64,000 bases of DNA from Eutreptiella sp. 'Long Island Sound 2002' (GCA_964036045.1 OZ038378.1:41292001-41356000), one strand, 5' to 3'. Shown: positions 4,900 through 52,448, numbered from the stretch's first letter. Notes: generated from the sequence alone by a model not told the origin. Numbers and translations: made by a program.

Positions 4900-7800
4900 A
4901 TACTCCGAGGAATGGGGCCCCAATTGAGGAGGGCAAGTGCACCATGCATGGCGCGAGAGACTCGGTCGGCTAGACCAAGCAACGCCCTCCGCAGGCTATC
5001 TAGTGGACGCTCCTAGACACTAGCCCCACCGGCGGGCACTAGCACGCCGGGCATTAGTGGGTCTCACGTCTGACGTGCGGCACGCGCTCTCGCCAGTTTA
5101 TCACTTCGCCGCGTAGAAGATGACGTGGCGCTTGCACAATCAACAACATCGAAGACTTGGACTCATGAGAGACATTGCACATGTCGGCGTATAGGCACAA
5201 AGCCCTCATAACCCACCAACCCCATCCATAGAAGGGTCTAGAGCCGCCCAATGGGGGAAACACTGTGCATCACGCTAGCACATCGGGCTAGGGATAGATC
5301 GATGCTATCATCGTGGGGCGCTGGGACGCTGTCAGGGAACCACACCACGCGCTTGGCGCCCGCACTGCGGCCTGCCCATGGGGGGAAGGCGGATGCCAGA
5401 TACATGGCACCCTGCCCGCCCCTGTGCATGCGGATAGGTAGGTCAGGAAAACCTGTCCAGTCCATGGCAAGCCAGGATGCTAGCTAGGGGCATGGGCTTG
5501 CCCTGTTTCTAACAGCAGCGCAAAATCTTCAGTGATCACCGCAGCGTGCAGCGGCCGAATATAGGTCAGAGCAAGTGGGTTGCGGAGGACTAGAGCATCA
5601 CTGTTTGCCCAAGTTGGGGACATATTGAGCACGCCAAACATGGTAACGCACAGGACCCCATGCTCAGCCGTCGGCTCCCCAATCGTCACCACGCGCAGAG
5701 GAAGAGTTTGAGATCCCTTGGTCACACGTGGAGCATGCATTGACTTCTCCTTCATTGTCCACCCTATAGCGACTTATTTAACTAAGAGGGACCGAAATGC
5801 GGAGGCCCCCGCCACACAGAGGCACAGGCACTGCAGGTCAAATACGAGCAGTCCAGTCGCCGACTGACTGCTCACAAAAAGGGAAGAATGCCTGGGTTCG
5901 GGAGTGTCGGACGTGACGATATGACCCGACCCACATGCACACCCAGATTTCATCATTAGAGAGATGAAACCTAGTGATGTGGTGGCCCACGAGCTACTAT
6001 GGTACTCTGGACGGCCTGGGGGGTGGGTATATGGAGGGGGGAAACAAGGATGCATCATAGAACGTCTACAGGACTGACTCGGGGTAGATGCACCATACTC
6101 AATGTTGCAAAAGCACAGATTAGGGCCGTAGGGCATGCAAGAAGGGCACCGCCACACGCGGCCCCTAGGGGGGCACATATCGCAATTCATGGGTTGTGAC
6201 TTGTGCTTGCGCAATCATGTGCTTCCATCCGTGGTGTGCTGGGACGGTACATATCCGGTGATTTGGTCTGCTGTGAGGAGGAGCCTCGCCACATCCCGTA
6301 TCGGGGCATTCGTGTAGTACGAACACGTAGGCTTACGGAGGGCCCTCATTGACTGCGGCCCGTAGCCTTTTCCCAAGGAGTAGCGCTCACGCTACCCCCA
6401 GCCGGTGTAGCACAATCACCAACAACGCCCGGCCCAACCACTCCGCTTATAAGGACGATGGGTCAACCACCAACACATGACACTAGAAATGAGCAGGGAC
6501 ACCCACCGAGTCAAGAAGGACGGCCGCAGCACCTATGCCGCGCTGCATTGAAGCGCCGTCAGACACAACCGTGACATGGGGCCGCAGGTCACGGCGCAGC
6601 CACTGTTCCCAGAAACCAAGCCTAGGAGACCCCTGCCCAGCGCTGCGCTTACATCTGCAGCGCATTCTCCTCACCCTGAAAGCCGCCAATGGCCGGACTG
6701 AATATGCTGGGGAATTGGTGCGCGGCCTACTGCGTGATCTAGATTTGAAGACCCTACCAAGGTCAGACCTGCTGGTCTTGCTCGGGGAGTGCGAAGCTCT
6801 TAGTCTCCAGCTATGTTTGGCCCCTTGCAAGAACCTTCAAGATGCTGCCCCAGGTGAAGACGAAACACCGGGCACTTGGACGGAACCCTCGTAGGCAGGT
6901 GTAAGGAACTGCGGGCCACTTGCTGCAATCGTGCTTGCATTGGAGCTAGCTCATCGACAGTCATGGGCACAAGGGTGAGGCGGAACTCCATTGAGGACTT
7001 TGCATACAGCAACGCCACCGTAAGGGCCAAAATGCATGAGGGCCTGGTGCGGCGCACCTTGGCCAGCACATGAGTGAAATGTTCTGAAATGGCACTGGCA
7101 TAGCATTTGGGGGACTCACCCATGAAGCAGGGGATGCCAGCAGTCTTGAGCCCATGGGGCTAGTACTCCAGTTGCCCAAGGGCACATGAGATGGACGCCG
7201 TCCCACAATAAAGTCTATCTTGGGCATGGTAGATATGGTACATCTTGAGCTTAGACGCATTCATCGTCCCCCCGGACACTGCAGCAAATCCGCAGGATTC
7301 GGCCAGATTATGCAGCATTTCCTCCAGAGACAGAACCATGTGGCGCCCATCATCGGAGAAGATCACTTCCGGGACCTGCACCCTTGGTAGGCAGGGGTGC
7401 ATGGTGCCTGTGGCGCAATCCAAGAGGGCCCACGACCGCAAGATGCACGGAATCGGGTACCCTCCCGTACCCATGCTGTCGCCATGTATTCCTCCCTATT
7501 GCATGTAGTAAGGGGGTGCTAGCTCATACGGAGTCTGTAGATAAACCATGAGGCCATCGGAAAACCACTTGGTCAGCAAACCCACATGCCCTAGGGGGAG
7601 GGGGTCATCCATGAGATAGCCCCGAAGGGCGTCCCTGTTTACATTGCACAGCATGGGGGTGGGTTCTAAGTAAGCAGGGGTCTGAGGCCAGGGTTCTAGA
7701 TGAGCTGCCTGAGGGCGTGTTGTAGGCCCTCGCGGCGTCATGCCACTGGGCCATGCTTGATTGGGTCCGGCAGCTCCGCGAGGGCAACTTTTCTAAGTTT

Positions 7801-8368
7801 CTCCAATCTGCTTTGCATATTTGCCTGTCGAAAAAGGACGCACGATGGCTAATTTGGAATGGCCGCACCATCGTCATATCCGTGTTCCTTCACAGAAGAC
7901 AATGAACCCTGCTGTTTGCTAATTTCATGTCCCGCGCCGAAATGACTGGGTTGATGCCCCCACGGGTGCATCCCTACCGCAAAGAATTCACTCCCCATGA
8001 CCTCGGTCTGTTTTTGAGGTGAGATTTGGCTTTTTCAGTGATCAAGTCACCGAAAGGGTGCTGGTGTGCGGATTGGGACCGGTAGGACAGGGTGGACACC
8101 ACTGACACAGGCCGCACCAGGCTCATGGCCAACAATTCACCCAGGCTGCAGAGCAGCTCTAGAAAGAAATCGCACATAGACAAGGCGTCTCAGGGCCTAG
8201 GCAGCACAGGGGCCAGGGACGCCTCTCCGCGGATCATATGGACATCATTCGCCAAAGCGCGCAGGCCATACAGCTCCTGAGCCTAGGTACGTGATTCATC
8301 AATGAAGGCACTAGGCTGACACGGAAAATGTACCCCGTCAAGCTGACTGCGGTGACTACACTAAATTT
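4900..8368 (-). pseudogene. 3' part of a degenerate non-LTR retrotransposon (reverse transcriptase + RNase H)
   Basis: Minus-strand motifs across frameshifts: RPFQISH, DAARAYNT, GGIHGDSMG, VIFSDD (YADD equivalent, ~7348-7359), GTMNASK; RNase H-like VVSDGAS...GIGAAAV (~6530-6570) and TVPAHH. The 3' boundary is approximate. Confidence 0.75.
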
Positions 8369-9670
8369 GGGGGTACAAACTTGACATCCAAAGGTCTCAG
8401 CGTCCGGCCGGGATGGGCAGTTTCACTGTTGCGGAAAAATGACCTCAAACACCCAACAAATCTTTATATGTCCGAAAACATCAATTTCCAACCAACACTG
8501 TTTTGGGGATTCCTCTTGTGCCACCCCAACCAACCCAAGGTTTCACTGTCAACAGTGAAACCCTCCGTCATCATTGTGCTGTACTACACTTTGAGCTGTA
8601 TGCAACGCCTTACTCCTGTCTACACCCCCCCCTTAGGATGGTGGTGGTGGTTCATTTTGGGTGGGATGGATTATATGAGCACCAAAATGTGCTGAATAGT
8701 GCAGGGTAGTTTCACTTTCAACAGTGAAACTCTGCCTTGCTCCGGAGGATATGACATAATATCAACGCCTCGAGCAGATAGCTCCACGAACTCGATGACC
8801 GGAAATAGTTTTGCCGTTGACAGTGAAACTAGTTGTGATACCGTGGCGCGTGTGTGTGTACTCAGAAAACGGTAACAAGCATCAAGCACTTTCACTGTTC
8901 ACAGTCAAACTATTTCCCACACTGTGGTGTCCAAGGGTAAACAAGGAAAGCGGGTAAAGTGAATTTTATTTTTTGGAAGACGCATGTAAAAAACGGAACC
9001 GGAAACATCGCCGGACCGTCGTCTGGTCCAATGGTTATAACCCTCGTCTCGTACCACTAGTGGGGGGCTTGATTCCCACTAGATCCCCCATCCTAGCTAC
9101 CCTGTGGCATACCACACCAGTGCTTGGTCACCCACTAGGCATGGTAAGTGCCCCGTTGCAAAGGGGGTACGGTACTAGTACTACCAAACCGGTAGTTTTT
9201 AGACGTGTTTTGTAGTATATAGTTGACCATGTAGTGAGACACCGGATTTCTAGCCTTGGTGGTGGGAAAAGTACCCCACCAGGACTTGGAGGCATCAGTA
9301 GAGTTGTACCAGACCCGTTCTCTCCTTGTGGGCTTCCCTATGGTTGTGGTGCATGGCGGGACAGTGGGGTGCCAACTGAGGGTCTCTTTGATGTTATGCC
9401 CCCCCCCAACGTACTTGCATTCACTCTATTGCCCACCTGCTTTCAGGTGGGAGGCATGCACATCATCGGATCACAAGCACTTTCACTGTCAACAGTGAAA
9501 CCACTTGCAGCCACTTCCTGTTAGGTCCACATGGTGTCTTTCCTCCTGTGCACAAGTTCTGTTATTGTACCCGTTGACACCTTCTCACCACGAACTTTTA
9601 TTGTCAACTGTGAAACCACTGGTTGTTGTCTGCTTGTTCTGTCTGTATGTGATCTGCCTCTGATGCCTCA

Positions 9671-11855
9671 GAGGGCATTATGACTGACATCAGTGCCTCC
9701 CCATTCAGTCTACGAGACTTGTGCTCGGGGTTGCACGACGTCCTGCACCGGGCTGACATGTATGAAGACGGGGACTCACTGGTGGAGTGCACTCTGGGGG
9801 GAGGACCAGCTTTGACTCTTGTGGAGATCAGCTTGAAGTTGCGTCTCAATCCTGGAACAAGACAAAGTATTGTGGAACTGAAGGAGCACTGGCCAAGTCG
9901 TGGGTCTGAGCAACGGCTACTGCGCTTCGTGCTTCATGCGTTCAAGCTCTTCCTCTGCATGCTGGTGCTAGCAAAGCTGTTGAAAGTGGCAGAAACGGTC
10001 CCCAGTACGGGGGTTATGACAACAATGACCAAGGAACAGCTGCTTGAGTTGCGGGGAAGTGGGCTTATACTCCATCGGGAATTACCATTGGCCAACCGGG
10101 TTGCCCTTGCACAAGAGCGGGTCCGCCAAGAAATGACACAAGGATGCTATGTGACATTGGTAGACCAGCTTTACAAGAGCCGGTACAGCAAAAATCAAGA
10201 CGGACCACGGGGCATCTCCTTGTCATGCACTGCTGTCGCTGTCCTCACAGGCCTGTCGGTGAGATTGTCACACACTGGGTGGCCTTCCGCAGAGTAATTG
10301 CAACACGGGTCAAGTCCGTGGCACTGCATATGCGGGACACGGTCACTGAGCTTTGGACTGTTGTGCAGGACCTGGGATCGGATCGACTGCCCCTTGGTCT
10401 TCTTCGTTGTCCATTGGATATTCGCCGGGGTAACCCCATGACTTCATCATGGCAGCCATACGGTTTATGGTACATCAGTGTCACCAAGACGGCGGGATCG
10501 GGGGACGTGTTGGTCCAGTTATTGCAACACAATCCTAAGAACCGGAACCCAGTGAAGGTATTACTTTGTGACATGAACATATGGTGGAGGGTTGCAAAGG
10601 TTGTGCACCATAGGGAGCATGCTGCTTCTCCAGTGCGCGGCGCGCTCCGTGACATATGCCCTGTCTATGGGATTTGGCACGCTTACAAGGTGTGTGTCAC
10701 TGCTTTATACAAGGCTTTTTCACCTTTTGTTATCTGCCTGGAGTATGATTGCTTCTTAATGGATCCAACAGCCACACGGGTGTACCAATACCCCGCTCTC
10801 ATTGTCCTGGAGAGGCCCATTCTTTCGTGCTACCTTGCGTATCCCGCACTGCAATCTCAATTCGACCATTGCCTCCGGAGTTTCACTGTGCACAGTGAAA
10901 ATTCCCTATGGAAGGAGCGCTGAGAGGCCCTGCGGGAATTATTGTAGGCTTATGTTCCTGCTGTGTTGCAGTTAGGTATAATGGTGTGTGACTGCTCCTC
11001 GGGACATCGGGCCTCTAGCACTGGTGTTGCAGCGCGCAAGGTTTTAGAATGCAGCCTGTTTCTGCTGCGGAAGATCAAGCCGACACATAGTCACCGCAAC
11101 TATATAAACACTATGTGCATTGCTCTCCTTCTGTGGCGTTCCTTCCATGTTGCATTGCCAGGTACTGCACATGTTCAAGAGAAAGGCGAATCTATGCTGT
11201 CTCGTCTTGTGAAAGCATCAAAGCATGATCTCAGTGCTACCACACTAAGCAATATGGGTCCCTGTTTTTAACCATTAGAAAGGCTCGACAAGGAACCACG
11301 TTCCAGCAAAAGCCCCATATAACATTGGGATGCGTCTAAACGGTGCAGGGTACGTCGCAAAACTTGTTGCACTGTTTGACCTCAGGCACGGCCCCCTTTG
11401 TACATATCAGAAGAGGTGAGATGGAGGATAATCCTAAGGCCATCTGCGTAAGAGGTACCAACATTTGGCCCGACAGTTTCAAATTTCCACCTGCCCTCAT
11501 GGACTCAACAAGCCTGCTTGAGTCGGAGTATATCCTACTGCACCAAAGCCTTCACACTCTTTTTTACCTCTCTGGCAAAGCGTCTGACAGGGCAGGCCGC
11601 CAGGCTGTAGCTAATAAGATGATCCAACACCAGCAACCGCCCCTTGGTCGTGACTATAGTTCCTTTTTTGATGACTATGCAGGAACGGCCGCACACCTAC
11701 GCGGAGTGCTACCACATGATGATCCGGCATTGGGACTGCCCATTTGGGAAAAGTTATCCAGAAAACGCAAAAGACCAGATGGCGTTGGTGACCAAAACGG
11801 GTCTCAGGTAGACTCCGATGATGATGCGGACCTTGATGCCGTGGCATTGGGATGA
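9671..11855 (+). pseudogene. Decayed putative DDE-type transposase (ORF A of the TIR element)
   Basis: Joined from ORFs 9680-10297, 10144-10923, 10963-11271 and 11343-11855, with a frameshift near 10270 and in-frame stops. Candidate catalytic D (LVDQLY, 10163), D (LCDMNI, 10570), H (GIWHAYK, 10678) and E (QEKGES, ~11179-11190). C-terminal RKRKR NLS-like motif and acidic tail. Confidence 0.55.
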
Positions 11856-12992
11856 TTTGTGCTATGTTGATTCTAAAAGCGATGACAACAACTGTATTTT
11901 AGTTGGGTAGGGCTGGCAATGCTCCGGAACACGGATGTACATTGTGGCTAATGGACCTGTCATGCTGCCAATGGTTGCGGTTCCACACTGTGTCCACGTA
12001 CCCCACATTTGCTTATGCACATGTGTCGAGTGCAATTGCCATCACGACGGGGGACAAGGGGATAGTGACTGGCTTTCACTGTCAACTGTGAGTCACCAGG
12101 TGAAGGAGGGTGGAATGTATCACACAACGATTATGCGCTGGTGTGTTGATAATGAAGGAAACAGCATACAATCAGAGAATATGGAGTGCAGTTGGCAAAA
12201 AGCGGTTGCTGCTTGTGTGGTTTTCAAGCTTTGAAAATGTCTTGATCACGTTCCCAATCATTGGTGAAACAAACAACCAAGCAAGGGTGAGACAATCGAA
12301 TATTTGGTTTTCACACAGACCAAGGTGAACCGAGTATCTGGCATGATGGTGACAAACGAAAAGTAGTGCCCCGTTGATAAGCAAAGACACATACTGCTTT
12401 GAACCAAATGGCCTACAACACAGTCACTGTTGACAGTGAAACACCGTTCCAAAAGGTGCCTCGGACAGGCAATTTCATGGTATTTTGGGCTGTTTTTCTC
12501 CTACTTGTGGCTCCTCCTTGTTCTTTGCAGGATCGAGTAAAACGGAGGACCCCACTGTGGAGCCTGAGCACCGAGACGAGGCGTAATCTAGTGAAGTGCC
12601 TGCCGATGAGAAAGAAGAAGATGACAAACCGAAGCGCAGTTCTGGCAGTGAAGCAGATGCTGATGGTGAGGAGAGTGGTTTGGGTGAGGAGGAGGAGGAG
12701 AGTTCTGAGTCTAAAGAGGAGGAAGAGGAGGAAGTTGAGCCGGAGCAGGATGACGAGACCAAAATACAATCGCGACGTTGCATCTTGGAGGGTGGAGACG
12801 CGGAGGCTCAGCAGGTCAGAAAATACATCATCGCAAGGAAGTACGTTGATGTCACCAAGTTGATCTGGGATGACGAGCTTAAGTACGGGCAGTCACGACG
12901 TGTAAAGCGATCCCGCCTCGCAAGACTCCGTCGCAGTCTCACCCACCGAGGGCTGATTGAGGAGGTCCGCGGTTATCTATCAGAAAGAGGAG

Positions 12993-13124
12993 GTATGTGC
13001 CCCAACCAGTGCAAGCTTTTGTATCAATCGTTTCACTGTTGATAGTGAAAGTACCCTGTCGTGTACCGATCGTTTCAATGTTGACATTGAAAGTCTCCCG
13101 TCCTTTGGCCCCTATCTGCGGGAG
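12993..13124 (+). other. Putative GT-AG intron containing two palindromes
   Basis: GTATGT donor at 12993; in-frame stop inside (13040-13042). Acceptor at 13124 (or decayed TGCAG at 13121). Removal rejoins the same frame and completes the ParB-like motif. Confidence 0.65.
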
Positions 13125-13507
13125 ACATCTAGCTGGTGCTCGGCGGACAACACATGTGCGCCATTGTCAAAGAACTCTGGCTCGCACTGACATCACCGAT
13201 TGAGGAGGGGGGTCAAGCTGTAGGTGAAAGTGTGGCACCCCGAGAAATGCGATTCATCCATGCCGTTATACTTCGTGAAGACACACCAGTGGAAATCTGC
13301 CGCCTTGCCGCCGGCCTGCACCAAAGGGCCCAGAGCGAATTCTGTGAGACCACTTTCTCCGAGGTGGCTGCTGCATTCCTGCAACGCTGTGCTGAAATCG
13401 TGATCAGGACCGGCCAGAAGTACGCAACGCCCGATGCTCGTGAGATCTTGGAAGTGGTCACAGATTTTGGGGTGCCATACAAGGAGTATATGGACATTGA
13501 CACAACG

Positions 13508-13603
13508 GTATGTGACAAGCGAATCTGCACTTAAAGGGCCGTGTTTCCACTGAGTTTCACTGTCAACCGTGAAACCACCTATCTTACTCCTCAACGTACC
13601 AAG
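13508..13603 (+). other. Putative GT-AG intron containing one palindrome
   Basis: GTATGT donor at 13508, in-frame TAA at 13532-13534, CAAG acceptor at 13603. Removing 96 bp gives DIDTT|AVNEW in frame. Confidence 0.65.
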
Positions 13604-16559
13604 GCCGTCAATGAGTGGAGGGGTATTGCACAGTTCTGTGGGATGATACTGGATGTTGGCGACAAGTTCACCCAGGCTGTTGCAGCGTTTGACAAGAAGA
13701 AGTGTTTCAGTCATGCTGCCTTCAAGGAAAGTGCTAGGCTACCGCGGTCATACTGTTTACAGCTTCCCAACTGGGTGGCGAGTGCACGGCCCACAATCAA
13801 CACCAATACGTTCTCCCAGAAGCTCAGAAACCTGAAGTGCCTATATCACGTCCGGAGTCATGTCTTCTGCCAAGGCAATCCAGAGATCCACAACGGCCAA
13901 CATATGCTTGTTGCCATCTACTCACATTCGTTGTTTCCTAGGTCCACTGCCTTACGTCGCACTGTTTCACTCTCAACAGTGAAACTGCTTTAGTGTCTCA
14001 TTGCAATGCAGGAACTGAGGCCACCGTGCAGATGCTCTATAATGCAATCAAGTGGGATGAGGGGTATTGGGCATTGGGTGCGACGGGCCGCGATGCAGCG
14101 AGGTACCAGCTGGGGACTGGTCAACCAACATGGCAAAATTCGCGGAAGGCAAAATTCTGGCAAAACCCTTTGCGCGTTGACACACGCAGGTCACTACGTG
14201 AAGCACTGTGTGCTGAGGAGACTAAAGCTGGTAGTGGGGGAGCTGCATTTGAGCTGCACGGAGTATGCAGTGTTGCCTTTGCTGGAACCGAGAGGGCGAT
14301 CCATTTCACTGGAGACGTGGGCAAGCTCTGTATGCCAAGGTCCAGCTCCTGTATATTGAAGTCCAGGAAGGAAGTGAGACATCACTTCTGCCGCCGGGAT
14401 TCCGAAAGAAGCTTGCCGCTAAAGGGGTCCCTACAATCCTGTACGGTCCAAATTTGAAGTACACCCTGGCGCGTCTCTTCGAAGAGGCTGCACCACTGCG
14501 GGAATGGCGGTACACTCGTATCCGGCTGTACACCCCCCGAGAAGACCTGCTGTTCACAAGCAAAAAGCCTGAAAATTTGACGACACGAACCCTGTGCGCT
14601 ATCTTGGTGACACCCGGAAGTATTGCACAGCACCCGCCATACGCTACTACAAATTTGGAGTGGAGGTCATCGTGGTTCCCCTGGCTCCCGGGATAGTTGG
14701 CTGGAGGACTTGTGGTACCAAGTGCACCAGAGCCGCCGGCAATTGTGGTGATGTTCAGCGCCCTCCGCAAATCAACACAAGTGTATGGGATGACAACAGC
14801 ACTGTTTGCCTGCCTCCCTGGTTGGTTGTTGCGGCTCTGGGTATAGGATGCATGGGGAGTGGGGACCGACTCAGTCAAGCAAAACGTGGTGCGGGCTGTA
14901 CAGCAATGTGCACAGGAACCAGGAGCAGAATTGCAAGCCGAAGGAGAGCTGTCACCGGCCCTAATGCCAGTGAATGCGCAGCAACTGCGCGTGCTTGATA
15001 AGAACCTCCGATGTGAAGTCAAAGCGGCAGAGAAACTGGATCACAAGAGGCGGAAGTTGGTTCTGAAGCAATGGGAAAAGGATGAACTCGCTGCAGCGAA
15101 AAAGTCACAAAAGGAGAACCGGGCAAAGGTTGGTGAACACAGGCAAGCAAGGCAGCATGAGAGGCTCCTAGATAGCCCATTCGGTGCCACCACCACTCCA
15201 GAAAACCGGGCTGTCCGAGGAGGTTTCACTGTTGACAGTGAAAGTGTCGGTCCTGAAGCTGCCTCATCCAATGGTGTCGATCTTGCGGTTCATGTGCCGC
15301 CAACTGACCTGGAACCTGCTTTCCATGGTGTTAGTGCCTATGCAAAGCTAGCTCCAAAACCAGCTCTTGCGAACAAGAAGGCGAAGTCCAAGACCACTGC
15401 CAAGACAGGTGCAAAGGGGCAGACGGACCACCCTCACCAAGATGCACCTGGAGGCTAGGGTGGATGTACAGAGTATTGACAAGGCTCAGCAGCAGGCAAT
15501 TGCACCGCAGATCGAGGCTGCCAACAATGCGGGTTCTGGCGGACGAGGAGCTCCGGGGCTGAAACGCAAATCCAAAGCACAAGCCGTGACCATCCCGAGT
15601 GTGGCTCGGCTTGAGCAGGCTTCGCGGAGGACCCGCAGTGCAAAGCAGTAGGCTCAATGGGAGGACGTGTCACTTGTGCTTTTTCGAGAACTGCTTTTGG
15701 TTGTATTGTTGTTGCCCTGACAACGTCTGCTGGTTTGCTGGGTTATCACAGTGTACCGTCACTGTCAACTGTGAAACAGACTGCCATAATGACACCTTTG
15801 CCCAAAATGCCGGAAACCGGTGTTAGATTTTTTCCTGTCATTGCAGCGCTCTCTGATGACCTACGGCACAGTTTGGTTCGGAAGTCCACTATGTGCTTTT
15901 GTTTTTCAATAGAAAGGAACAATCATTTATAGACCATAAATTGTACCCTTCAGCCTCTGTCTTGGACTGCATGGACATATGACACTGTCTCTGTGTATTT
16001 GCACTGTACATCACAACAGGAGCCACGTACTGTTTATCTTCAATGTCAATTTCACCAACAGGGTCATATATTTGGAGTATTGTTTCCACGCTGCACCTCA
16101 TAGCGCAGTATAAAACTCTGTTTCACTATTAACAATGAAACTATCTCCCTCGCTGATGTCATTTGCCAGTGACGGTATTTTTCATTACGGACATGCTTCT
16201 ACACATGCAAGTACACGGTGTGCACAAGTGCCCTACCTGTGTTTTGTGTTGCTCGTTTACATACACTCGTTTGTCACAGGGGGAAGTTGTTCCTAGCTGC
16301 ACCTGGTCCACAGCCGCACATGGGATGGAATGGAGGGGGGGGGTGGTGGTGGGGATGCCGTCCATCACACCTGAATGCCTCTATGTTAGTTGCTATTTCA
16401 CTGGTGACAGTGACACAAGATGAAATATGGCCCCCACAGTGCAGTTTTGGGAAATTGAATTTTTATGTCCGTTTCATTGTTGGCCACACAGGCCAACGGT
16501 GAAACTTTTTGCCCGTTTTCGGGGTTCCCGTTGGCCCGGGACATCAAGTTCGTACCCCC

Positions 16560-18456
16560 AAGCTAAAAGACTTCTTCTTAAACTTATACAGCCTGGAGGA
16601 TACAACATTCACCGACTTCAGTTGGGATGGCTTAGGCTCCACCGACGGTCCTGCTTGACACACACGGTCACTAGCCTGTTGCCGCCTCTTTTGAACGCAC
16701 TCCTCTACACACTTGTCTCCCTGAAGAGCACGGTACTCCCAAACCCTGAGGCAACTAGAGTCATCACATTGTATTTTCCCTATATACCTGGGTATAAACT
16801 ATAGGGCCCGTTGGAAATACTGGGTCATGTAGTCGTCGATGGAGAAACCTAACACAACATCGTACCGGTAAAGCAGCGAGGCATGAGCTGTGCAATGGAA
16901 GCCGGCACGGCTTTACGGAAATTGAGTCGCCGCTCCGGAAAATTCTTGTTTTACGAGAAATGGGAGGTATTGTGAACTAACAGCAGAGCGCCCCGTGGTG
17001 GGACACACCAGGGTAGACCGCTTTCGCCGACAGGGAAACTGGGGACAGCACATCCACCAGATTGTAGTCTATCTCAATACGGACCACTTTGCCGGACCCA
17101 ACTGGCTGAACATTCGTGGGCTCCCCGGAGGGGTAGTGGATATGAAGGAAAGCCCAGCAGTTGCCAGGCCACAGACACTTGGAAACGTTGGACCCCGCTC
17201 CCGGATGGAGGGTTTCATTGAGGTCACCCGCAACAAAAAGCCGATCATTCACGGTGCGCCGGGCCTCGGCCATTCGCTTCTGTATAATGCCCCACACATT
17301 GGCTGCCTATCTAGGACGCCTCTACACATTGCACCCAGTGATGCGGTGCCCATTAGGTGTGGCGAGAAAGAATTTTTGCACATCCGCACAAGATTGCACC
17401 GGTTCGGGGCCCGTAGCCTCCTTCCCAGCTGAGGGCCGGGGCACGAAAGCATAGGTGACCATGATGGCCATGCCAGCCCCGCGTTCCGCCACCCCAGCGT
17501 AGCAAACTTTGTACCCCATACCCTCTAGTTCGCTAACTTCAAATCCTTCCCAGAGTTCCACAACCAAATCGGTCAAAGTAGCTATGATATCAGTTGCTTT
17601 ACATGCAACACCACCACAATTCATGCTGAGGAAGGTGAGGTTAGATAGGGAATCCATACAGCAGATATCCTGCTGTAGGAGCTCAGCACTGCCCGTTACC
17701 AGGGGGAGGATACCACCAGGTACGGATCTAGATCTAAAGGGAGGTGGGGGGCGACAAACACAGGAGGGTGCACGGCTGCACTACAATTGTGCTTGCGGCA
17801 CAACAAGGTGAGTAGGACCCCATCCATACAAATGGACCCCGTAACATAGCCGTAACATGTATCAGCAAGCGCTCTAGTAACATGCTCTGACTAGATCTTG
17901 GGACACAAGCCGGGCATGCCCCGGACCTAGCCCCTGGACTCTGGCATATGGAAGAGGAGGCCGGTAACCACTCGGGGGCGCTGGCAGATAGTACATGGAG
18001 CTCCACCTGGTACTGGCATGGCCGCACATGGTGACAGAGCATGGTTGACGGTTACATGCTCCTCAACAGGAAGGTGGAGCAGAGTTGGGGGACGGCATCC
18101 TAGCGTGGTGACGCAGTGATCCACAAGCAGATCACTGTACCTTGTGTCATCAGCGGGGAGAAATCAGCCCCGTGGGCCAATCTACCCGACACGGAGGCCA
18201 CGCAGCCCGCCTAGAGAGTGAGCACGTGCAGCGCCGTGCAGAGGAGAGGGGACGAGATCAATACGAGGACTTGAGGGTCGCAGCCTAGACCCCTGCCCAG
18301 CTTGGCAGTAGCCCCGGGGGAGGACCTCCTGATCACCCAAAAAAGGGACCCGTTGGAAGTGGCTCTCAGAGCATGAGGCACATGTCGGGGTCTCTCTATG
18401 CTGGACAAACCCAAAGGACACACATACGAGTTTGGAGGCCAAGCGGCCCTCCTGGA
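16560..18456 (-). pseudogene. Middle part of the same LINE: apurinic endonuclease (APE) domain and upstream Cys-rich region
   Basis: LTFLSMNCGG, DLVVELWE, RGAGMAIMV (17322-17657); FVAGDLN, IEIDYNLV, SHHGAL (16977-17297); CxxC motifs at 17850-18100. Confidence 0.8.
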
Positions 18457-18464
18457 CACCAAGT

Positions 18465-18994
18465 CAGGCCTCCCCTAATTACCCGTCGCGCCACCCGTCA
18501 TATGGCAAAAAACGCCGTTTTTTGGCCAAAATCCACGCTTTCCATTGTTTTTCTGGTGTTGTTTGGTGTTTTTTGGTGTTTTTTGGTGTATGAATTACAG
18601 CTATTGTGCAGAAGGCAGGTTGAAATAAAAACAACCATTCAGGAACTACATTCAGTGCACTAGGACAGACAGGACACCAAACATGGGCCTGCTGCAGCAT
18701 CTTGTGCTTTCCAAAAAACCAAAAAACACCCAAATTTCTAGAAAAAACCAAAACAATCCACCCATCCAATGGTATGACGTCCACTGCCCCCAAGCCTACT
18801 CAACCCCCAACCCCAACAAACCATGGAAAAAATCCATTTTGGGGGCAAATGGGCACAACAAGTAGCCAGAAAACATCCAAAAAACACCAAAAAACATCCA
18901 AAAAACACCAAAAAACACCAAAAAACAGACCTGTTGAATAGACCAACCCGCCACCCGCCAAAATGGCCTGAGGCGGGTGTTTTTGTGAGGCTTG
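18465..18994. mobile_element. 530-bp hAT-like MITE
   Basis: Perfect 8-bp TSD CACCAAGT (18457-18464 and 18995-19002). Imperfect TIRs CAGGCCTC..ACCCG / CAAGCCTC..ACCCG. AT-rich interior with inverted (ttttttggtg)/(caccaaaaaa) runs. Confidence 0.8.
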
Positions 18995-18995
18995 C

Positions 18996-21682
18996 ACCAA
19001 GTTGTGCATCCTCTAGGGTCATGCAGGGAAGAACGGGGAGCACCTCACGCGCCCCGTTGACAACGTTGATGCAGGCCAGCGGGACACAGCGGACACCTTG
19101 GCCGGAGTGACGCCTGCACCACAGCCATCGTCAGGGCCAGCAGCAGTGGGGGGCAGCAGTAAGTTTGCGGAAGGGCATACAGCAGTCACATGCCGCCCGG
19201 GCCCCGGTAGCCTCCTTGTGACGGATGCTGTGAGCATGACACTTCGTACTCCTCCCCGGGCGCTCTGAATGACCCCGCGTCGGACTTGGCCGTCGGAGTA
19301 GTTGCGAGGGTCAAAGTGGTCCTCATCTCTGCCCCGATGCTGGGCAGTGGCATCTCAAGGGACGGGGCTGGGGGATCGTCGTGTAGAGCCCATCGAGGCC
19401 CTGTCTATGGAGACACGCCATTGGCGGAGGGATGGCGGTGGGTGAGGGGGGGCGGCGTGGAGCATATCTGTGGGGGGGGTCGTATTGATGGGAGCCATAC
19501 CGTGGGCCTTTTTGCCTCTTGTGCGGAGGCTCGGAGTGGGACCGGGACTCATTCTTGGCACGGGGGGGTTGGAGGCTTCACAGGGAGTCTGCCCACTGAC
19601 GTGTGAGGCAAAGGTTTGGGGGGCTCCAGGGCTTCATACTCGAGGCGTCCGAACACGTGTGGGGTGGTGACCAAGTTGTGCATCCTCTAGGGTCATGCAG
19701 GGAGGGACGGGGAGCACCTCACGGGCCCCGTTGACAACGTTGATGCAGGCCAGCGGGACACAGCGGACACCTTGGCCGGAGTGACGCCTGCACCACAGCC
19801 ATCATCAGGGCCAGTAGCAGTGGGGGGCAGCAGTAAGTTTGCGGAAGGGCATACAGCAGTCACATGCCGCCCGGGCCCCGGTAGCCTCCTCGTGACGGAT
19901 GCTGTGTGTATGACACTTCGTACTCCTCCCCGGGCGCTCTGAATGACCCCGCGTCGGACTTGGCCGTCACGGTAGTTGCGAGGGTCAAAGTGGTCCTCAT
20001 CTCTGCCCCGATGCTGGGCAGTGGCATCTCAAGGGACGGGGTTGGGGGATCGTCGTGTAGAGCCCATCGAGGCCCTGTCTATGGAGACACGCCATTGGCG
20101 GAGGGATGGCGGTGGGTGAGGAGGGGCGGCGTGGAGCATATCTGGGCGGGGGGGGTCGTATTGATGGGAGCCATACCGTGGGCCTTTTTGCCTCTTGTGC
20201 GGAGGCTCGGAGTGGGACCGGGACTCATTCTTGGCACGGGGGGGTTAGAGGCTTCTCAGGGAGTCTGCCCACTGACATGTGAGGCAGAGGTTTGGGGGGC
20301 TCCAGGGCTTCATACTCGAGGCGTCCGAACACGTGTGGGGTGGTGACCAAGTTGTGCATCCTCTAGGGTCATGCAGGGAGGAACGGGGAGCACCTCACGC
20401 GCCCCGTTGACAACGTTGATGCACGCCAGCGGGACACAGCGGACACCTTGGCCGGAGTGACGCCTGCACCATAGCCATCATCAGGGCCAGTAGCAGTGGG
20501 GGGCAGCGGTAAGTTTGCGGAAGGGCATACAGCAGTCCCATGCCGCCCGGGCCCCGGTAGCCTCCTCGTGACGGATGCTGTGAGTATGACACTTCGTACT
20601 CCTCCCCGGGCGCTCTGAATGACCCCGCGTCGGACTTGGCCGTCACGGTAGTTGCGAGGGTCAAAGTGGTCCTCATCTGTGCCCCGATGGTGGGCAGTGG
20701 CATCTCAAGGGACGGGGTTGGGGGATCGTCGTGTAGAGCCCATCGAGGCCCTGTCTATGGAGACACGCCATTGGCGGAGGGATGGCGGTGGGTGAGGGGG
20801 GGCGGCGTGCAGCATATCTGGGGGGGGGTGTCGTATTGATGGGAGCCATACCGTGGGCCTTTTTGCCTCTTGTGCGGAGGCTTGGAGTGGGACCGGGACT
20901 CATTCTTGGCACGGGGGGGGTTAGAGGCTTCTGAGGGAGTCTGCCCACTGACGTGTGAGGCAGAGGTTTGGGGGGCTCCAGGGCTTCATACTCGAGGCGT
21001 CCGAACACGTGTGGGGTGGTGACCAAGTTGTGCATCCTCTAGGGTCATGCAGGGAAGAACGGGGAGCACCTCACGGGCCCCGTTGACAACGTTGATGCAG
21101 GCCAGCGGGACACAGCGGACACCTTGGCCGGAGTGACGCCTGCACCACAGCCATCGTCAGGGCCAGTAGCAGTGGGGGGCAGCAGTAAGTCTGCGGAAGG
21201 GCATACAACAGTCACATGCCGCCCGGGCCCCGGTAGCCTCCTCGTGACGGATGCTGTGACTATGACACTTCGTACTCCTCCCCCGGCGCTCTGAATGACC
21301 CCGCGTCGGACTTGGCTGTCACGGTAGTTGCGAGGGTCAAAGTGGTCCTTGTCTCTGCCCCGATGGTGGGCAGTGGCATCTCAAGGGACGGGGCTGGGGG
21401 ATCGTCGTGTAGAGCCCATCGAGGCCCTGTCTATGGAGACACGCCATTGGCGGAGGGATGGCGGTGGGGGAGGGGGGGCGGCGTGAAGCATATCTGGGGG
21501 GGGGGGGGGTCGTATTGATGGGAGCCATACCGTGGGCCTTTTTGCCTCTTGTGCGGAGGCTCGGAGTGGGACCGGGACTCATTCTTGGCACGGGGGGGTT
21601 GGAGGCTTCTCAGGGAGTCTGCCCACTGACGTGTGAGGCAGAGGTTTGGGGGGCTCCAGGGCTTCATACTCGAGCCGTCCGA
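18996..21682. repeat. Four tandem copies of a ~675-bp LINE-internal segment
   Basis: Units start at 18996, 19670, 20346 and 21022 (periods 674/676/676) and are highly similar. They differ by scattered SNPs and poly-G length. Confidence 0.97.
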
Positions 21683-22116
21683 GCGGGTGTTCGTGATCGT
21701 GGCCATCCGGCCTTAGGGGCCCATGGGGATTTGAACCGGCGGCATTGAGGTGCTAATGGGCTGCCATACACTTATCAGGAGGAGCAGGAAGCAGACTCTC
21801 ATCGCGGTGCCCTTGGTGGCCAGGCCACTCGGCTAATGGGGCCGGTGCACCTCGCACCGGAAATAGCCTGAGGCAGCTGCCACATACGCAGGCCAGGGAA
21901 GCCCTTTTGCCACCGGGTTGAGGTTTGCATCTCCTGGGGACGGGGGGGGGGGGGTTGAACGGAGCTGCACAGGTGGGTCTAGTGGAGGCCAATGGGACAC
22001 CCATCTGCTAGAGGACTATGGTAGCCCAATCCGGGGAGGCGACGCGGCGGCAGCGCTCCCGTACAATGTCGGGTAGGGTCTTCAGCGTAGACAACTGCAT
22101 GATGCGGGACACATAT

Positions 22117-33565: not shown

Positions 33566-34749
33566 ACCCCAACACTATCCTTGAACCCAACCTTGACTCT
33601 AATGCCCACCCCAACCCTCAGCCTACTCCTAACCCTACCCCCAAACCTTACCCTTGACCCTAACCCGAACCCTCGCCCCAACCCTAATCAAGACTGAATA
33701 TTGGGACCGAGCGAGTGGGGGAGGGAACATCAGCTGTGACTGGTGAGGGACATCAAGAATGATTCACACATTGATGGCTCTTGACAAAGTGAAATCAGCT
33801 TGCAAGTGAACCCCATCACCACGAGGCCCACTTTCAAGGCTTTTTGGGACTTCTGGGGGGCCAAAATGCTCCAAAATGGGTTCAAAATGGGCTCATTTCA
33901 CCTGTTTGTGCACCCCAAATTGTCCAGGATGAGGTTTGGAAAAATGCGTTTTTGACCCATATTTGACCCATTTTTGGTCCCAAAACAGCCCATTTCCAAG
34001 GCATTTTGGGATTTTCGGGGGACCAAAATGGGCCACCACAAGCTCAAAACGGTCCAAAAACACTTGTTTTAGCGTCGCACATGGTCGAGGATCATTTTTG
34101 AGAAAAGTCATCTTTTTGCCCCTACTGGACCCTGTTGACCCATTTGGGCACCCACCTATTTCGGTTTGAGTTAGCAGCTTGCCGCAGCCTAATGGGCCTA
34201 GGTACGGGGGTCTAGGCGTCCATTTGGGCATTTCTGAGGGGTGGAAACCACAAAAAGTGGGGGGTTGCGGGTAGAGTAGGTACCCTCGGAATCGCATTTT
34301 GAGCCATGTAGCCAAAGATATGGCCTATTCTTGGTTTGTGGCTGTCGGCATTTGGAGCTTTTTGGGGGCCTTTTTGGGCCGTTTCCACGACATATCATGG
34401 AGTTAGAGGGCCGCAAAGAGCTTGTTGACACGGGGAAGTCAAGCCGCACGTGGAGTGTACCCACCGTTTCCCTTCGTTTGGCTGTTTTGAATGTGTTCCA
34501 GGGCTTTTTTGGCCCAAAAATGGCTGTTTTTGGCCCTAAACTGCAGTTTTTGAAACCGAGGTCCGCCACTTGCAAATCCAGTTCGTGGCCGCCACCTTCG
34601 AGTTTCTCGCTCAAACTTTGTGTGATTGTACTTCACACCCATATAGGTATCATGCACCAAAATTTCACCCGAATCCGAAGCACCACGACGGAGTTCTGAT
34701 TTTTGCCCATTTCGCGCGTGCTGCTGCTTGCTGCTTGCTGCTTGCTTGC

Positions 34750-34796
<47 letters not shown>

Positions 34797-36135
34797 ACTG
34801 CTGCTGCTGCTAAACCTGGTAGGTCCACCCTAGACACTAAAAGGGGTTATAAAACCAAGACTTGTTCCACCAGCTCGGTGACCCTAACCCTAACCCTAAT
34901 CAAGACTGAATATTGGGACCGAGCGAGTGGGGGAGGGAACATCAGCTATGACTGGTGAGGGACATCAAGAATGATTCACACATTGATGGCTCTTGACAAA
35001 GTGGAATCGGCTTGCAAGTGAACCCCATCACCACGAGGCCCACTTTCAAGGCTTTTTGGACTTCTGAGGGGCCAAAATACCCCAAAATGGGCTCAAAATG
35101 GGCTCATTTCACCCGTTTGTGCACCCCAAATGGTCTAGGATGAGGTTTGGAAAAATGCGTTTTTGACCCATTTTTTACCCATTTTTGGTCCCAAAACAGC
35201 CCATTTCCAAGGCATTTTGGGATTTTCGGAGGACCAAAATGGGCCACCACAAGCTCAAAACGGTCCAAAAACACTTGTTTTAGCGTCGCACATGGTCGAG
35301 GATCATTTTTGAGAAAAGTCATCTTTTTGCCCCTACTGGACCCTGTTGACCCATTTGGGCACCCACCTGTTTGGGCTTGAGCTCGCAGCTTGCCGCAACC
35401 TAGTGGGCCTAGGTATGGGGGTCTAGACGTCCATTTGGGGAATTTTGAGGGGTGGAAACCACAAAAAGTGGGGGGTTGCGGGTGGAGTAGGTGCCCTCGG
35501 AATCGCATTTTGAGCCATGTAGCCAAAGATATGGCCTATTCTTGGTTTGTGGCTGTCGGCATTTGGAGCTTCTGGGGGCCTTTTTGGGCCGTTTCCACGA
35601 CATATCATGGAGTTAGAGGGCCGCAAAGAGCTTGTTGACATGCGGAAGTCAAGCCGCACGTGGAGTGTACCCACCGTTTCCCTTCGTTTGGCCGTTTTGA
35701 ATGTGTGCCGGGGCTTTTTAAGCCCAAAAATGGCTGTTTTTGGCCCTAAACTGCAGTTTTTGAAACTGAGGTCCGCCACTTGCGAATCCCGTTCCCGGCC
35801 GCCACCGTTGAGTTTCTCGCTCAAATTTTGTGTGATTGTACTTCACACCCATAGGTATCATCCACCAAAATTTCACCCGAATCCGAAGCACCACGACGGA
35901 GTTCTGATTTTGGCCCGTTTCGCGCGTGCTGCTTGCTTGCTGCTTGCTGCTTGCTTGCTGCTTGCTTGCTGCTTGCTTGCTAAACCTGGTAGGTCCACCC
36001 TAGACACTAAAAAGGGTTATAAAACCAAGACTGGTTCCACCAGCTCGGTCTCCCTAACCCTAACCCTAACCCTAACCCTAACCCTAACCCTAACCCTAGC
36101 CTTGCCCCTAGCCCTAGCTCTCACCCTAGGCTCGG
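33566..36135. repeat. Two ~1.2-kb tandem units separated and flanked by interstitial (CCCTAA)n
   Basis: Units start at 33688 and 34900 (period 1212). Degenerate CCCTAA array at 33566-33687, 3 copies at 34881-34899, about 7 perfect plus degenerate copies at 36052-36130. Each unit contains a (GCTT/GCT)n microsatellite. Confidence 0.92.
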
Positions 36136-40239: not shown

Positions 40240-40679
40240 TTTTGACCCAATGGTTGAGGTGGATTAGAGGAAGAGACGGGTCCATGTGTTGCATAGTGAG
40301 AGGGCAAACAAGGGGACGCAAAGGCGTCTTGACATTTGCCTTGCCGATGATGACGGTGATGATAATGATGATGATGTTTTTGAGGACCATTGTGCTGATG
40401 AAAGTAATGATCATTTCCCAGGCTTCGGTTTGAGCTCTAATTCACACTCTAGCTCTAGTTGTGTGTCTTCCTCCGACTCCGACTCAGATTAGTTGTGAAC
40501 ATTTGTTGACCTCAAGACTGTCCACATGGAGTATGTCACATGGATTGCATGTCATTCATCACCTGGACCTGCTTTGTCCAAGTGTCTAACCGACCAAGGG
40601 GTTGTGGGTGCGCACTGTTGCGATGTCAATGGTGACCCCCCCCCCCCCCAACCAACCAACCAACCAAACGAAAATAACC

Positions 40680-41270
40680 ATGAGAAAGCGTAAGCAAAAG
40701 CGCATAGTGGCCCTAGGGTCACTGCTGCGGTCCCTGGAGGTGGACTTCTTCGCCATCCAAGAGCCCCACTTCGTCACGGTGGAGGATCGTCAAGTGGGCA
40801 TGCAGTGCTTATCAAAGTACGGGTATGGCCTGGACGGACCACTTCATGAAGAAGGACGGGGAGGAGTGGCATTGGCGTGGAAAACATCCAAGTGGACACT
40901 ACAATCAATGAAGTTCTTGTCTCCCAGGGCGCTGAAAGCCTCACTGTCGAGTGGTCCACTGGAGATCACCATAGTTGTGGCCCACTTCCATCACAAGCAC
41001 ACGCGTCGACAGTCGCAGTGGAAAGACATCGCCAAGGAGCTACATGGACCGAACCCGATTCTGTGTGCAGATCACAATAGTTTAGTTGTAAAACACAGGG
41101 ACGCCTTTGCGCCCCCAGAGTTTGAGCATGACACGCCCTTACGTGCCAGAGAACAGGAGGTGACAACCCTGGCGAAAGCAGGTCTGCAGGACGTCTGGGT
41201 GGACATCCACTGTCCAACTCTGACGGACATCAAGGACAAGGAATCATCGTGCCCGACGGGCTTCCCTCTT
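40680..41270 (+). pseudogene. Truncated APE endonuclease of a second LINE family
   Basis: DFFAIQEPH, GRGGVALAW, ILCADHNS, GLQDVW and PTGF within ORF 40602-41489. A diverged partial copy lies at ~42075-42135. Confidence 0.8.
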
Positions 41271-41444
41271 GCGGCTGTTCCAAAGAACGCTCTTGAGGCA
41301 GGCAGACCCGGTACCCGGGGACGCTGTGCGGTTCCTCTACACGCTGCTGAGCACACCCCCATGCGAAAGAAGATACACATGACGGGTGATGACACACAAG
41401 GGGGGGTAGGAAAGAAAGATTGGAGCACGTGGTGCAGATACCCA

Positions 41445-41550
41445 ATCGTCGTGGCCCAGTGGATACACCACACCTCTTCTGTCTTGTAGAGGATGGTTCG
41501 AACCCCGGGGGGGATAGAGATACACCGAACGACCCGAACCCCCCTTTTTG
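41445..41550 (+). other. tRNA-derived, SINE-head-like sequence with a T5 run, followed by GA-rich repeats
   Basis: A box TGGCCCAGTGG (41452), B box GGTTCGAACCC, TTTTT near 41545; no canonical cloverleaf. Confidence 0.35.
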
Positions 41551-52234: not shown

Positions 52235-52448
52235 GCAAATTTGCTTGAACCAGTAGAGGGTCAAAAAATGGGTTTTCACCCTATGTGTCTACTCAAAATA
52301 CTCAGTTTTTTTAGGAGAACTGTAGTTCCGTAGGAATGGAAGTTCCGCCCGGAGTGCGTGTGTGTGTGCCCGATTGACTCCACTGGGGGCGTCTCCCTCC
52401 CTGTTGTAGATAAGTTTTTCTGTGACTGAGGTGCACTGCTCTAGTGCC

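Follow-up and report, generated by a model that had tools for sequence, protein, structure and literature searches.

The general idea that DNA transposons of algae carry ParB-like accessory proteins together with arrays of inverted repeats is already published. Plavaka elements of red algae carry PAG3, in which a ParB-like N-terminus is fused to a 2-oxoglutarate (2OG) oxygenase and which lies beside tandem inverted-repeat arrays; PAG3 was proposed to bind and modify its own element, and PAG genes also occur in Zisupton, Mutator and Fanzor-type elements (Petroll et al. 2025, bioRxiv 10.1101/2025.02.11.637652; Curr Biol 2025). A survey of transposable elements in Ectocarpus reported a ParB-methyltransferase gene in the Sola1 element Sola1-1_Ec32 (PMC12477816), and fusions of ParB, helix-turn-helix (HTH) and methylase domains were noted in chlorophytes by earlier comparative work (PMC4738411). 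The tested example of an accessory protein of this kind is VANC of the VANDAL elements, which binds motifs in the non-coding DNA of its own element and thereby prevents silencing (PMC5735166). Here we describe an 8.2-kb transposon with terminal inverted repeats (TIRs) at positions 8366-16562 of a 64,000-nucleotide stretch of DNA from Eutreptiella sp. 'Long Island Sound 2002' (GCA_964036045.1 OZ038378.1:41292001-41356000), hereafter the window. Between its TIRs lie a transposase gene, a second gene and an array of palindromes, designated open reading frame (ORF) A, ORF B and the array, respectively. A preliminary description made from the sequence alone knew of no described eukaryotic transposon with this organisation, a statement that the reports on PAG3 (10.1101/2025.02.11.637652) and on the Ectocarpus Sola1 protein (PMC12477816) contradict. 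The present element differs from these in its transposase family, in an ORF B that lacks a recognisable enzymatic domain, in sites running through introns and codons, and in the clear co-variation of these sites across families.

The array is a real feature and not a chance pattern and, judged from the distribution and variation of its sites among copies and relatives, very likely represents the set of binding sites for a protein encoded by the element itself. The ends of the element were fixed by comparison with younger copies. The 21-mer first proposed as the TIR (8369-8389 on the plus strand; 16539-16559 on the minus strand with 3 mismatches; chance expectation 0) stops 3 bp short of the true ends at 8366 and 16562. 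The complete TIR has 24 bp and starts CTTGGGGGTAC; its family form is CTTGGGGGTACGAACCTGACATCC, and the other end is the reverse complement in all three copies compared. Outside the TIRs lies a perfect 5-bp target-site duplication (TSD), CTAAA in the window and different in the two other copies (ACCAA and TTCGC, each perfect). The assignment to the eukaryotic TIR transposons is supported. The boundary features, in window coordinates, are as follows.

8361-8365, no strand: left TSD CTAAA, identical to the 5-mer at 16563-16567
8366-8389, plus strand: 5' TIR TTTGGGGGTACAAACTTGACATCC
16539-16562, minus strand: 3' TIR, placed by comparison of copies
16563-16567, no strand: right TSD CTAAA, matching the left TSD

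The preliminary description proposed to look for younger copies, and a protein search recovered two of them, L001 and L003, with the same ends, TSDs of their own and 17 palindromes each. The search with an ORF B exon returned many near-identical fragments on large contigs of the ENA assembly ERZ25074135; dozens of these lie on separate contigs, which shows that multiple dispersed copies are present in one genome. Five copies were examined (the window copy, L001, L003, L004 and L005), and the TSD evidence comes from three copies from ERZ25074135. L001 and L003 are about 98% identical to each other, and the window copy is about 89-90% identical to both. The diverged loci L004 and L005 are older copies that carry decayed forms of the window palindrome; P0025 (43% identity) and P0049 (61%) were considered as diverged paralogues with another site and rejected, since they are older decayed copies with the same palindrome. 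The window copy derives from an autonomous DNA transposon of the cut-and-paste type in a eukaryotic genome and is itself old and inactivated. As in class II, subclass 1 elements, there are TIRs with a TSD of fixed length, a transposase with a ribonuclease H (RNase H) fold in the model of a relative, and dispersed copies.

Three further observations concern the copies. L001 sits in a satellite of about 21 bp (CCACCAACCGCCATCGGTTAC; L001 5000-5068 and 13438-13750), and because the insertion lies in this satellite its 5-bp duplication is easily read. In L003, 571 bp containing ORF B exon 1 are absent (L003 12126-12183 compared with L001 9325-9954), and the deletion falls exactly between two palindromes, both of which are retained; the palindromes may have been bridged, or they may be break-prone. 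Finally, L002, a contig of 1346 bp from JGI metagenome 3300040751, is 99% identical to L001 ORF B exon 4, which indicates that this sample contains the host of the element or an organism very closely related to it.

The palindrome consists of two 10-bp arms around a 2-bp spacer, GTTTCACTGT-YR-ACAGTGAAAC, and has 22 bp in total. The spacer is CA or TG, the two forms being one site in its two orientations; the earlier division into 7-bp half-sites around a self-complementary 8-mer is replaced by this structure. With 3 mismatches allowed, the consensus matches the window 14 times, and with 4 allowed 17 times; every match falls within 8540-16416, and a half-site (8420) and a split palindrome (16471-16505) raise the total to 19, in agreement with the approximately 19 copies first noticed between the TIRs. 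There is no palindrome in the remaining 55.8 kb of the window, and 0 are expected in shuffled sequence. With 17 palindromes at matching positions in each of three copies, the 24.4 kb of element DNA contain 51 sites and the 81.5 kb of flanks contain none. The sites span the whole element, including both subterminal regions, the region upstream of each gene, every ORF B intron and, twice, coding sequence.

8420-8431, plus strand: terminal half-site GTTTCACTGTTG, located about 55 bp inward from the 5' end and at the same position in L001
8540-8561, no strand: palindrome 1, perfect, 5' subterminal, consensus match
8709-8730, no strand: palindrome 2, 5' subterminal, consensus match
8808-8829, no strand: palindrome 3, 5' subterminal, consensus match
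8889-8910, no strand: palindrome 4, 5' subterminal, consensus match
9480-9501, no strand: palindrome 5, upstream of ORF A, consensus match
9595-9616, no strand: palindrome 6, upstream of ORF A, 4 mismatches
10880-10901, no strand: palindrome 7, within the ORF A coding sequence, encoding SFTV(D/H)SE in a variable loop
12073-12094, no strand: palindrome 8, between ORF A and ORF B, 4 mismatches
12421-12442, no strand: palindrome 9, just upstream of ORF B, consensus match
13030-13051, no strand: palindrome 10, ORF B intron 1, consensus match
13072-13093, no strand: palindrome 11, the second in ORF B intron 1, 42 bp downstream of palindrome 10
13554-13575, no strand: palindrome 12, ORF B intron 2, consensus match
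13964-13985, no strand: palindrome 13, ORF B intron 3, consensus match
15223-15244, no strand: palindrome 14, within the ORF B exon 4 coding sequence, encoding GFTVDSES
15756-15777, no strand: palindrome 15, 3' subterminal, 4 mismatches
16120-16141, no strand: palindrome 16, 3' subterminal, consensus match
16395-16416, no strand: palindrome 17, 3' subterminal, consensus match
16471-16505, no strand: split palindrome, located about 57 bp inward from the 3' end, with a GGCC...GGCC segment inserted between its arms

The two terminal half-sites have the same orientation relative to the ends. Both palindromes in coding DNA lie in stop-free frames, one in the variable loop of ORF A (SFTVDSET) and one in ORF B exon 4 (GFTVDSES).

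Our comparison was extended to contigs that carry transposase relatives and derive from unrelated metagenomes (L006-L010 and L013-L016). Their palindromes are CAACGGGATCGATCCCGTTG in L006 (8-9 copies), TACGCGGA-AA-TCCGCGTA in L007 (at least 4 copies), CACGCGGA-NN-TCCGCGTG in L015 (5-6 copies), TTTCGTAAC-N-GTTACGAAA in L014 (at least 12 copies, tandem clusters included), TTCGCTCC-NN-GGAGCGAA in L016 and ACGGCGAGGCCTCGCCGT in L010, while L008 and L009 share GGTCCCGT-NN-ACGGGACC. Two of these elements are complete (L006 291-6962 and L014 700-8257); their TIRs begin with CTTGG and enclose all sites. The metagenome contigs L006, L013 and L014 gave no clean TSD, possibly as a result of chimeric repeat assembly. 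At every relative locus with enough flanking sequence, an ORF B homologue adjoins the transposase gene, on either strand (tblastn E 2e-12 in L007 and 5e-18 in L015, weaker scores in L006 and L014; E 8e-6 in L016 with a hidden Markov model built without L016). Moreover, L001, L015 and L016 share a phase-1 intron at one and the same codon of the ORF B N-terminal domain, just before a G-Q-H motif, and in each of the three it holds the family's own palindrome.

Similar persistence was observed in the transposase gene, where L007 (3028-3049) and L015 (1997-2018) have a palindrome at the same alignment column, encoding (Y/H)A(E/D)(I/V)RVP and overlapping the conserved R-V-P codons of a nearly invariant R-x-P-x-D motif. 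In L014, two tight tandem clusters (5322-5437 and 7747-7817, spacing 29 bp and about 23 bp), of which one separates the divergent genes and the other follows the transposase gene, resemble the arrays reported beside PAG3.

Site positions thus persist while site sequences change, which is the pattern that would be expected of sites co-evolving with a DNA-binding protein encoded by the element, and which argues that the array is conserved and recognised by such a protein. With the two genes constant and the palindrome rewritten in each of six to eight families, the comparison points to a recognition pair under continuous co-evolution. The relatives also bear on the label 'parS-like' given to the site at first. 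The half-sites of the bacterial parS consensus are GTTTCAC and GTGAAAC, and both occur within the window palindrome. This would fit a true ParB-parS derivative, in which a bacterial ParB gave rise to ORF B and parS to the palindrome, with loading at the sites and spreading as a cytidine triphosphate (CTP)-dependent clamp. However, homologous elements of six related families use unrelated palindromes, for example AACGGGATCGATCCCGTT or ACGCGGA-NN-TCCGCGT, and the resemblance to the parS half-sites is therefore not inherited but coincidental. Furthermore, the half-sites, which abut in the 16-bp parS, are 8 bp apart in the window palindrome, and this spacing places them on different faces of the helix. 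Together with the features of ORF B considered below, this makes descent from ParB-parS highly improbable.

ORF A is a reading frame of about 745 amino acids (aa) without introns, assembled from overlapping pieces of several copies. Relative to L001, the window copy has three frame changes and three in-frame stops, and the decayed transposase-like gene of the preliminary description is thereby borne out.

9680-11910, plus strand: ORF A, decayed gene for a predicted DDE transposase, intronless, about 745 aa when intact
10151-10186, plus strand: first predicted catalytic Asp motif VTLVDQLYKSRY (family consensus W-x-D-N...RY)
10561-10590, plus strand: second predicted catalytic Asp motif LLCDMNIWWR (D invariant in the family)
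10666-10689, plus strand: invariant G-x-W-H-x-Y-K, just after the last core strand
11173-11208, plus strand: probable third catalytic acid motif (family VEE..EA.LSRL; the window copy has Q in place of the first E)

The ORF A sequence had no match in Pfam, NCBIfam, PHROGs or PDB sequences; a Pfam DUF6589 hit (E 0.009) was judged spurious, as it recurs in only 1 of 52 family members. A search for related loci that started from an alignment of 10 sequences yielded no more than five short loci from metagenomes, and an ORF A profile run against 1.84 billion representative proteins identified 631 relatives at E<=1e-3, many of them full-length at about 700 aa. These come from metagenome or sequencing-run assemblies (ENA, JGI, Logan) and have no Pfam domain and no name. 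In an alignment of 52 sequences an Asp, a Trp-His and a Glu are invariant, and W-x-D-N and VEE..EA.LSRL nearly so. The AlphaFold2 model of the closest full-length relative, P0068, has a predicted local distance difference test (pLDDT) of 83.9 and a predicted template modelling score (pTM) of 0.81. A Foldseek comparison with the PDB placed the Drosophila P-element transposase (6p5a) first, with a probability of 0.99, followed by Hermes, HzTransib, ISCth4 and RAG1; the similarity to Hermes is weaker than that to the P element, and the probability for Transib is 0.38. All of the best structural matches are RNase H DDE enzymes with a helical insertion domain. In the model the conserved Asp residues follow core strands and VEE..E lies on the helix that follows the insertion domain. 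By this model, ORF A is predicted to be an RNase H-fold DDE transposase with an all-helical insertion domain, of the class of the P-element, hAT and Transib enzymes. An intron around the ORF A palindrome was also considered and ruled out. The downstream ALRxLLxEYxPA segment is conserved family-wide and the ORF is open in L003; the palindrome therefore lies in coding sequence, and the L001 stop is a genuine lesion.

The palindromes could instead be transposase sites, comparable to the subterminal repeats of Ac, En/Spm and P but present in larger number, bound by a helical N-terminal dimer of ORF A, with ORF B serving another role. In the P0068 model the first approximately 150 residues are helical, the half-sites at about 55 bp inside both TIRs have the same orientation relative to the ends, and clusters of sites closely flank the transposase gene in all relatives, including the short contigs L008-L010 in which no ORF B is visible. 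On the other hand, the sites extend over the whole 8 kb, including all ORF B introns and coding DNA, a spread that is unusual where a transposase binds its ends; the sequences of palindrome and TIR are unrelated; and the conserved site-bearing intron is in ORF B and not in ORF A. Although these points together are not decisive, we regard the transposase-site explanation as rather unlikely.

In L001, the gene model of ORF B has four exons (9445-9895, 9987-10372, 10462-10768 and 10879-12524) joined at GT-AG sites with matching phases, giving a 2790-nt ORF of 929 aa without internal stop. This gene model was mapped onto the window, where ORF B occupies 12542-15651; there its start codon has changed from ATG to ACG, 3 of the 6 splice sites are lost, and two frame changes lie in exon 4.

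12542-12992, plus strand: ORF B exon 1, with an acidic N-terminus followed by the first half of the ParB/sulfiredoxin (Srx)-like domain (12857-12992)
13131-13507, plus strand: ORF B exon 2, with the LGGQH motif at 13139-13168 and the HTH-like DTP(L/V)EICRLAAGLHQ at 13280-13324
13585-13902, plus strand: ORF B exon 3, from the L001 model
14012-15651, plus strand: ORF B exon 4, with two frame changes; its C-terminal half is unconserved between families

The conserved part of the protein comprises residues of about 95-436, and the C-terminal half is fast-evolving and of low complexity. No enzymatic domain was recognisable in ORF B with Pfam and the other sequence libraries searched. Polyubiquitin matches were ruled out, as they arose from translation running into intron 1.

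The three introns of L001 ORF B (89-110 nt) each contain exactly one palindrome near the middle, and one intron with its palindrome position is kept in three families. Both observations would agree with palindromes that act as RNA hairpins in transcripts, in intron splicing of ORF B or in a small-RNA pathway, and not as DNA sites. However, most sites lie outside introns, being subterminal, promoter-proximal or, in L006 and L014, in tandem clusters between divergent genes; they occur in both spacer orientations; hairpins would need no single exact sequence at every position; and an Rfam scan of the window matched no RNA family. We therefore consider the hairpin explanation improbable. An origin of the palindrome-bearing introns from introners or miniature inverted-repeat transposable elements was ruled out, as the three introns share nothing beyond the 22-mer.

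The preliminary description assigned a ParB/Srx-like motif to the second gene. A conserved gene is present and the motif is recognisable as a pattern, KLIWDDELKYGQSRR ... LGGQHMCAIV in the window, whereas the sequence searches reported below do not confirm the assignment and the structural matches are non-significant. Five families share the pattern h-x-h-x-x-h-x-W-D...GQ-x-R...h-x-x-L...G-x-Y-x-L-x-G-Q-H...A, which by eye fits the strand-helix-strand-strand-helix layout of the ParB/Srx core, and a T-P-L-E...A-G-x-H-Q segment after this core is HTH-like. A structural model was obtained for the domain of the L014 homologue, which is uninterrupted by an intron, from a shallow alignment of 13 rows. 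In Foldseek searches with this model, the first 11 PDB matches are sulfiredoxin (31% identity over about 51 columns), followed by Caulobacter ParB, SbnI and 1vk1, and the first match in BFVD is named 'ParB/Sulfiredoxin', with about 9 of the top 50 carrying ParB-type names, all at E>0.3. Fold comparison of both proteins had been suggested at the outset; it gave a confident DDE-like model for the ORF A relative and left the ParB/Srx matches of ORF B in this non-significant range. The pattern and the ranking of these matches lend weak though coherent support, and we consider it somewhat probable that ORF B has a ParB/Srx-type domain at its N-terminus.

The nucleotide-binding motif of ParB box II, at the strand-helix junction, is GxxR, and its arginines bind CTP in partition ParBs. 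In ORF B the conserved L-(G/S)-(G/S)-Q-H of five families aligns at the expected position of this motif but without Arg; G-Q-H is closer to the variants of Srx (GCHR) or DndB (DGQHR). Because the CTP-binding arginines are absent, a ParB-style CTP sliding clamp is not expected, and its presence in ORF B is unlikely from the sequence. For a ParB-parS descent this is a further difficulty, as is the lack of ParB sequence similarity in any search; the Foldseek matches to Caulobacter ParB and to phage 'chromosome partitioning' proteins over 160-225 columns speak in its favour.

We favour an explanation in which a dimer of an element-encoded protein, most likely ORF B, binds the palindromes and so marks or organises its own element, and we think it rather probable as a whole. 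The autonomous element with its CTTGG... ends encodes the ORF A transposase and the accessory ORF B of 929 aa, and the 22-bp palindromes would be the binding sites of the dimer. Being the most likely binder, ORF B would then mark or coat exclusively the DNA of its own element. The purpose could be, in the order in which we would rank the options, to maintain an open transcriptional state of the element, in the manner of VANC in VANDAL; to bring the ends and the body of a large element together for transposition; or to autoregulate the two promoters. As to the identity of the binder, ORF B is slightly favoured over all other candidates taken together, the transposase is somewhat unlikely, and both proteins jointly or another protein would be less likely still.

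Several points weigh against the favoured explanation. ORF B was negative for ParB/Srx, including ParBc (PF02195), in Pfam, NCBIfam, PHROGs, PADLOC and phmmer/hmmsearch comparisons with the PDB, and negative for ParB in tblastn against plasmids and in hhalign against F SopB and P1 ParB. The model of the L014 domain is poor, with a pLDDT of 50 and every Foldseek match at E>0.3, and where CTP-dependent ParB has the nucleotide-binding arginines of GxxR, ORF B has G-Q-H. ORF B also lacks a recognisable enzymatic domain, unlike PAG3 and the ParB-methyltransferase. Moreover, the N-terminus of the transposase is equally a candidate binder, and half-sites are found about 55 bp inside either end, in the region to which transposases commonly bind.

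On a wider scale, the element may belong to an undescribed, widespread eukaryotic DDE superfamily with CTTGG termini, a 5-bp TSD where readable, a P/hAT/Transib-like fold and, as its hallmark, a ParB/Srx-HTH protein with fast co-evolving palindromes of 20-22 bp that run through the entire element, conserved introns and even codons included, a suggestion that we make only tentatively. If it is true, the module would enable every family to coat, mark or fold its own DNA only. Detailed knowledge of how transposons discriminate self from genome and escape silencing is limited to very few systems, mainly VANC/VANDAL, and the families would provide a natural panel of cognate and non-cognate protein-site pairs for specificity swaps. 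They would also extend the link between ParB-like proteins and algal transposons to another transposase family and to an accessory protein without an enzymatic domain. Because the transposase family has no Pfam model, such elements are likely unannotated in protist and algal genomes.

The remainder of the window contains further repeats and gene remnants. A unit of about 676 bp is present in four head-to-tail copies that are 97-98% identical (18888-21801). A 335-bp tandem repeat with three units of 100% identity (56879-57663) has a related 136-bp piece 4.7 kb upstream (52314-52449); the repeat and this piece flank a long ORF with a reverse-transcriptase domain (53594-56749), and the 335-bp repeat may belong to a retroelement. 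At 33669-36069 we observed a 1.2-kb tandem duplication with a TGCT(T) microsatellite and interstitial CCCTAA (TTAGGG-type) telomere-like repeats. An ORF at 40602-41489 with a weak endonuclease/exonuclease/phosphatase match (E 0.001) is probably an endonuclease remnant of the long interspersed nuclear element type. Long poly-C tracts recur across the window.

Among known transposases, those of the P, hAT and Transib groups are the most similar to ORF A. They share the RNase H DDE core, a helical insertion between the last core strand and the helix with the third acid, and the conserved W-H after the second Asp region, and Transib also shares the 5-bp TSD. In contrast to them, the ORF A family lacks THAP, BED and hAT-dimerisation domains and has no sequence similarity to them; its termini are CTTGG and not the CAC(A/T)ATG of Transib, and its TSD has 5 bp and not the 8 bp of P and most hAT elements. 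The P-element superfamily is defined by an 8-bp TSD, a THAP DNA-binding domain and sequence similarity to P/THAP9; with a 5-bp TSD and no THAP match in Pfam searches of 52 family members, our element resembles it at the level of the fold only. The hAT superfamily has an 8-bp (rarely 5-6 bp) TSD, a BED finger and a C-terminal dimerisation domain, and neither BED nor Dimer_Tnp_hAT was matched in Pfam in the same 52 members. With Transib the length of the TSD does agree, but the termini differ and no sequence match to Transib/RAG1 PDB chains was found. Plavaka and the CACTA-KDZ group have a Plavaka, KDZ or Transposase_21-type transposase, CACTA-like termini and a 2-3-bp TSD; ORF A has no such Pfam match, and its termini and TSD are different. 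Literature searches returned no described superfamily with the features of the element. On these comparisons with Pfam, PDB sequences and the literature, the ORF A family appears unnamed and is set apart from P, hAT, Transib and Plavaka/CACTA.

With regard to the accessory protein, bacterial ParB-parS would be alike in a dimeric binder with a possible ParB/Srx N-domain ahead of an HTH, and in several palindromic sites. It differs in that the present system resides in a eukaryotic nuclear transposon in which no ParA-like ORF was seen, with no CTP-binding arginines, half-sites 8 bp apart and a site that is unconserved. The Myb-like ORF of PIF/Harbinger and TnpA of En/Spm are likewise second DNA-binding proteins that act on repeated subterminal motifs, aiding the transposase or regulating, but they belong to other protein families and their motifs are confined to the ends.

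The carriers of PAG3 are closer, as TIR DNA transposons with a DDE transposase, an accessory protein with a ParB-like N-terminus and inverted repeats as the proposed own-element sites. Compared with them by description, the window element has a 5-bp TSD, CTTGG termini and no Plavaka/CACTA/KDZ Pfam match; in ORF B and its homologues in L015, L006 and L014 neither a 2OG domain nor any other enzymatic domain was recognised; the sites are scattered over the whole element, introns and coding DNA among them, whereas the PAG3 array is tandem beside the gene; and no PAG1 or PAG2 partners were seen in the window element. The Ectocarpus Sola1 ParB-methyltransferase is also a ParB-type module on an algal DNA transposon, proposed to target its own element (PMC12477816; PMC4738411), but it has an N6A/N4C methyltransferase domain, which ORF B lacks, and its transposase superfamily, Sola1, is different. 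VANC of the Arabidopsis VANDAL elements, which are Mutator elements, is unrelated to ORF B in sequence, and its motifs are short tandem direct repeats and not palindromes of 20-22 bp. In functional terms, VANC is the best analogue of the system described here, being an accessory protein whose own-element motifs diverge together with it between families (PMC5735166, PMC10398659).

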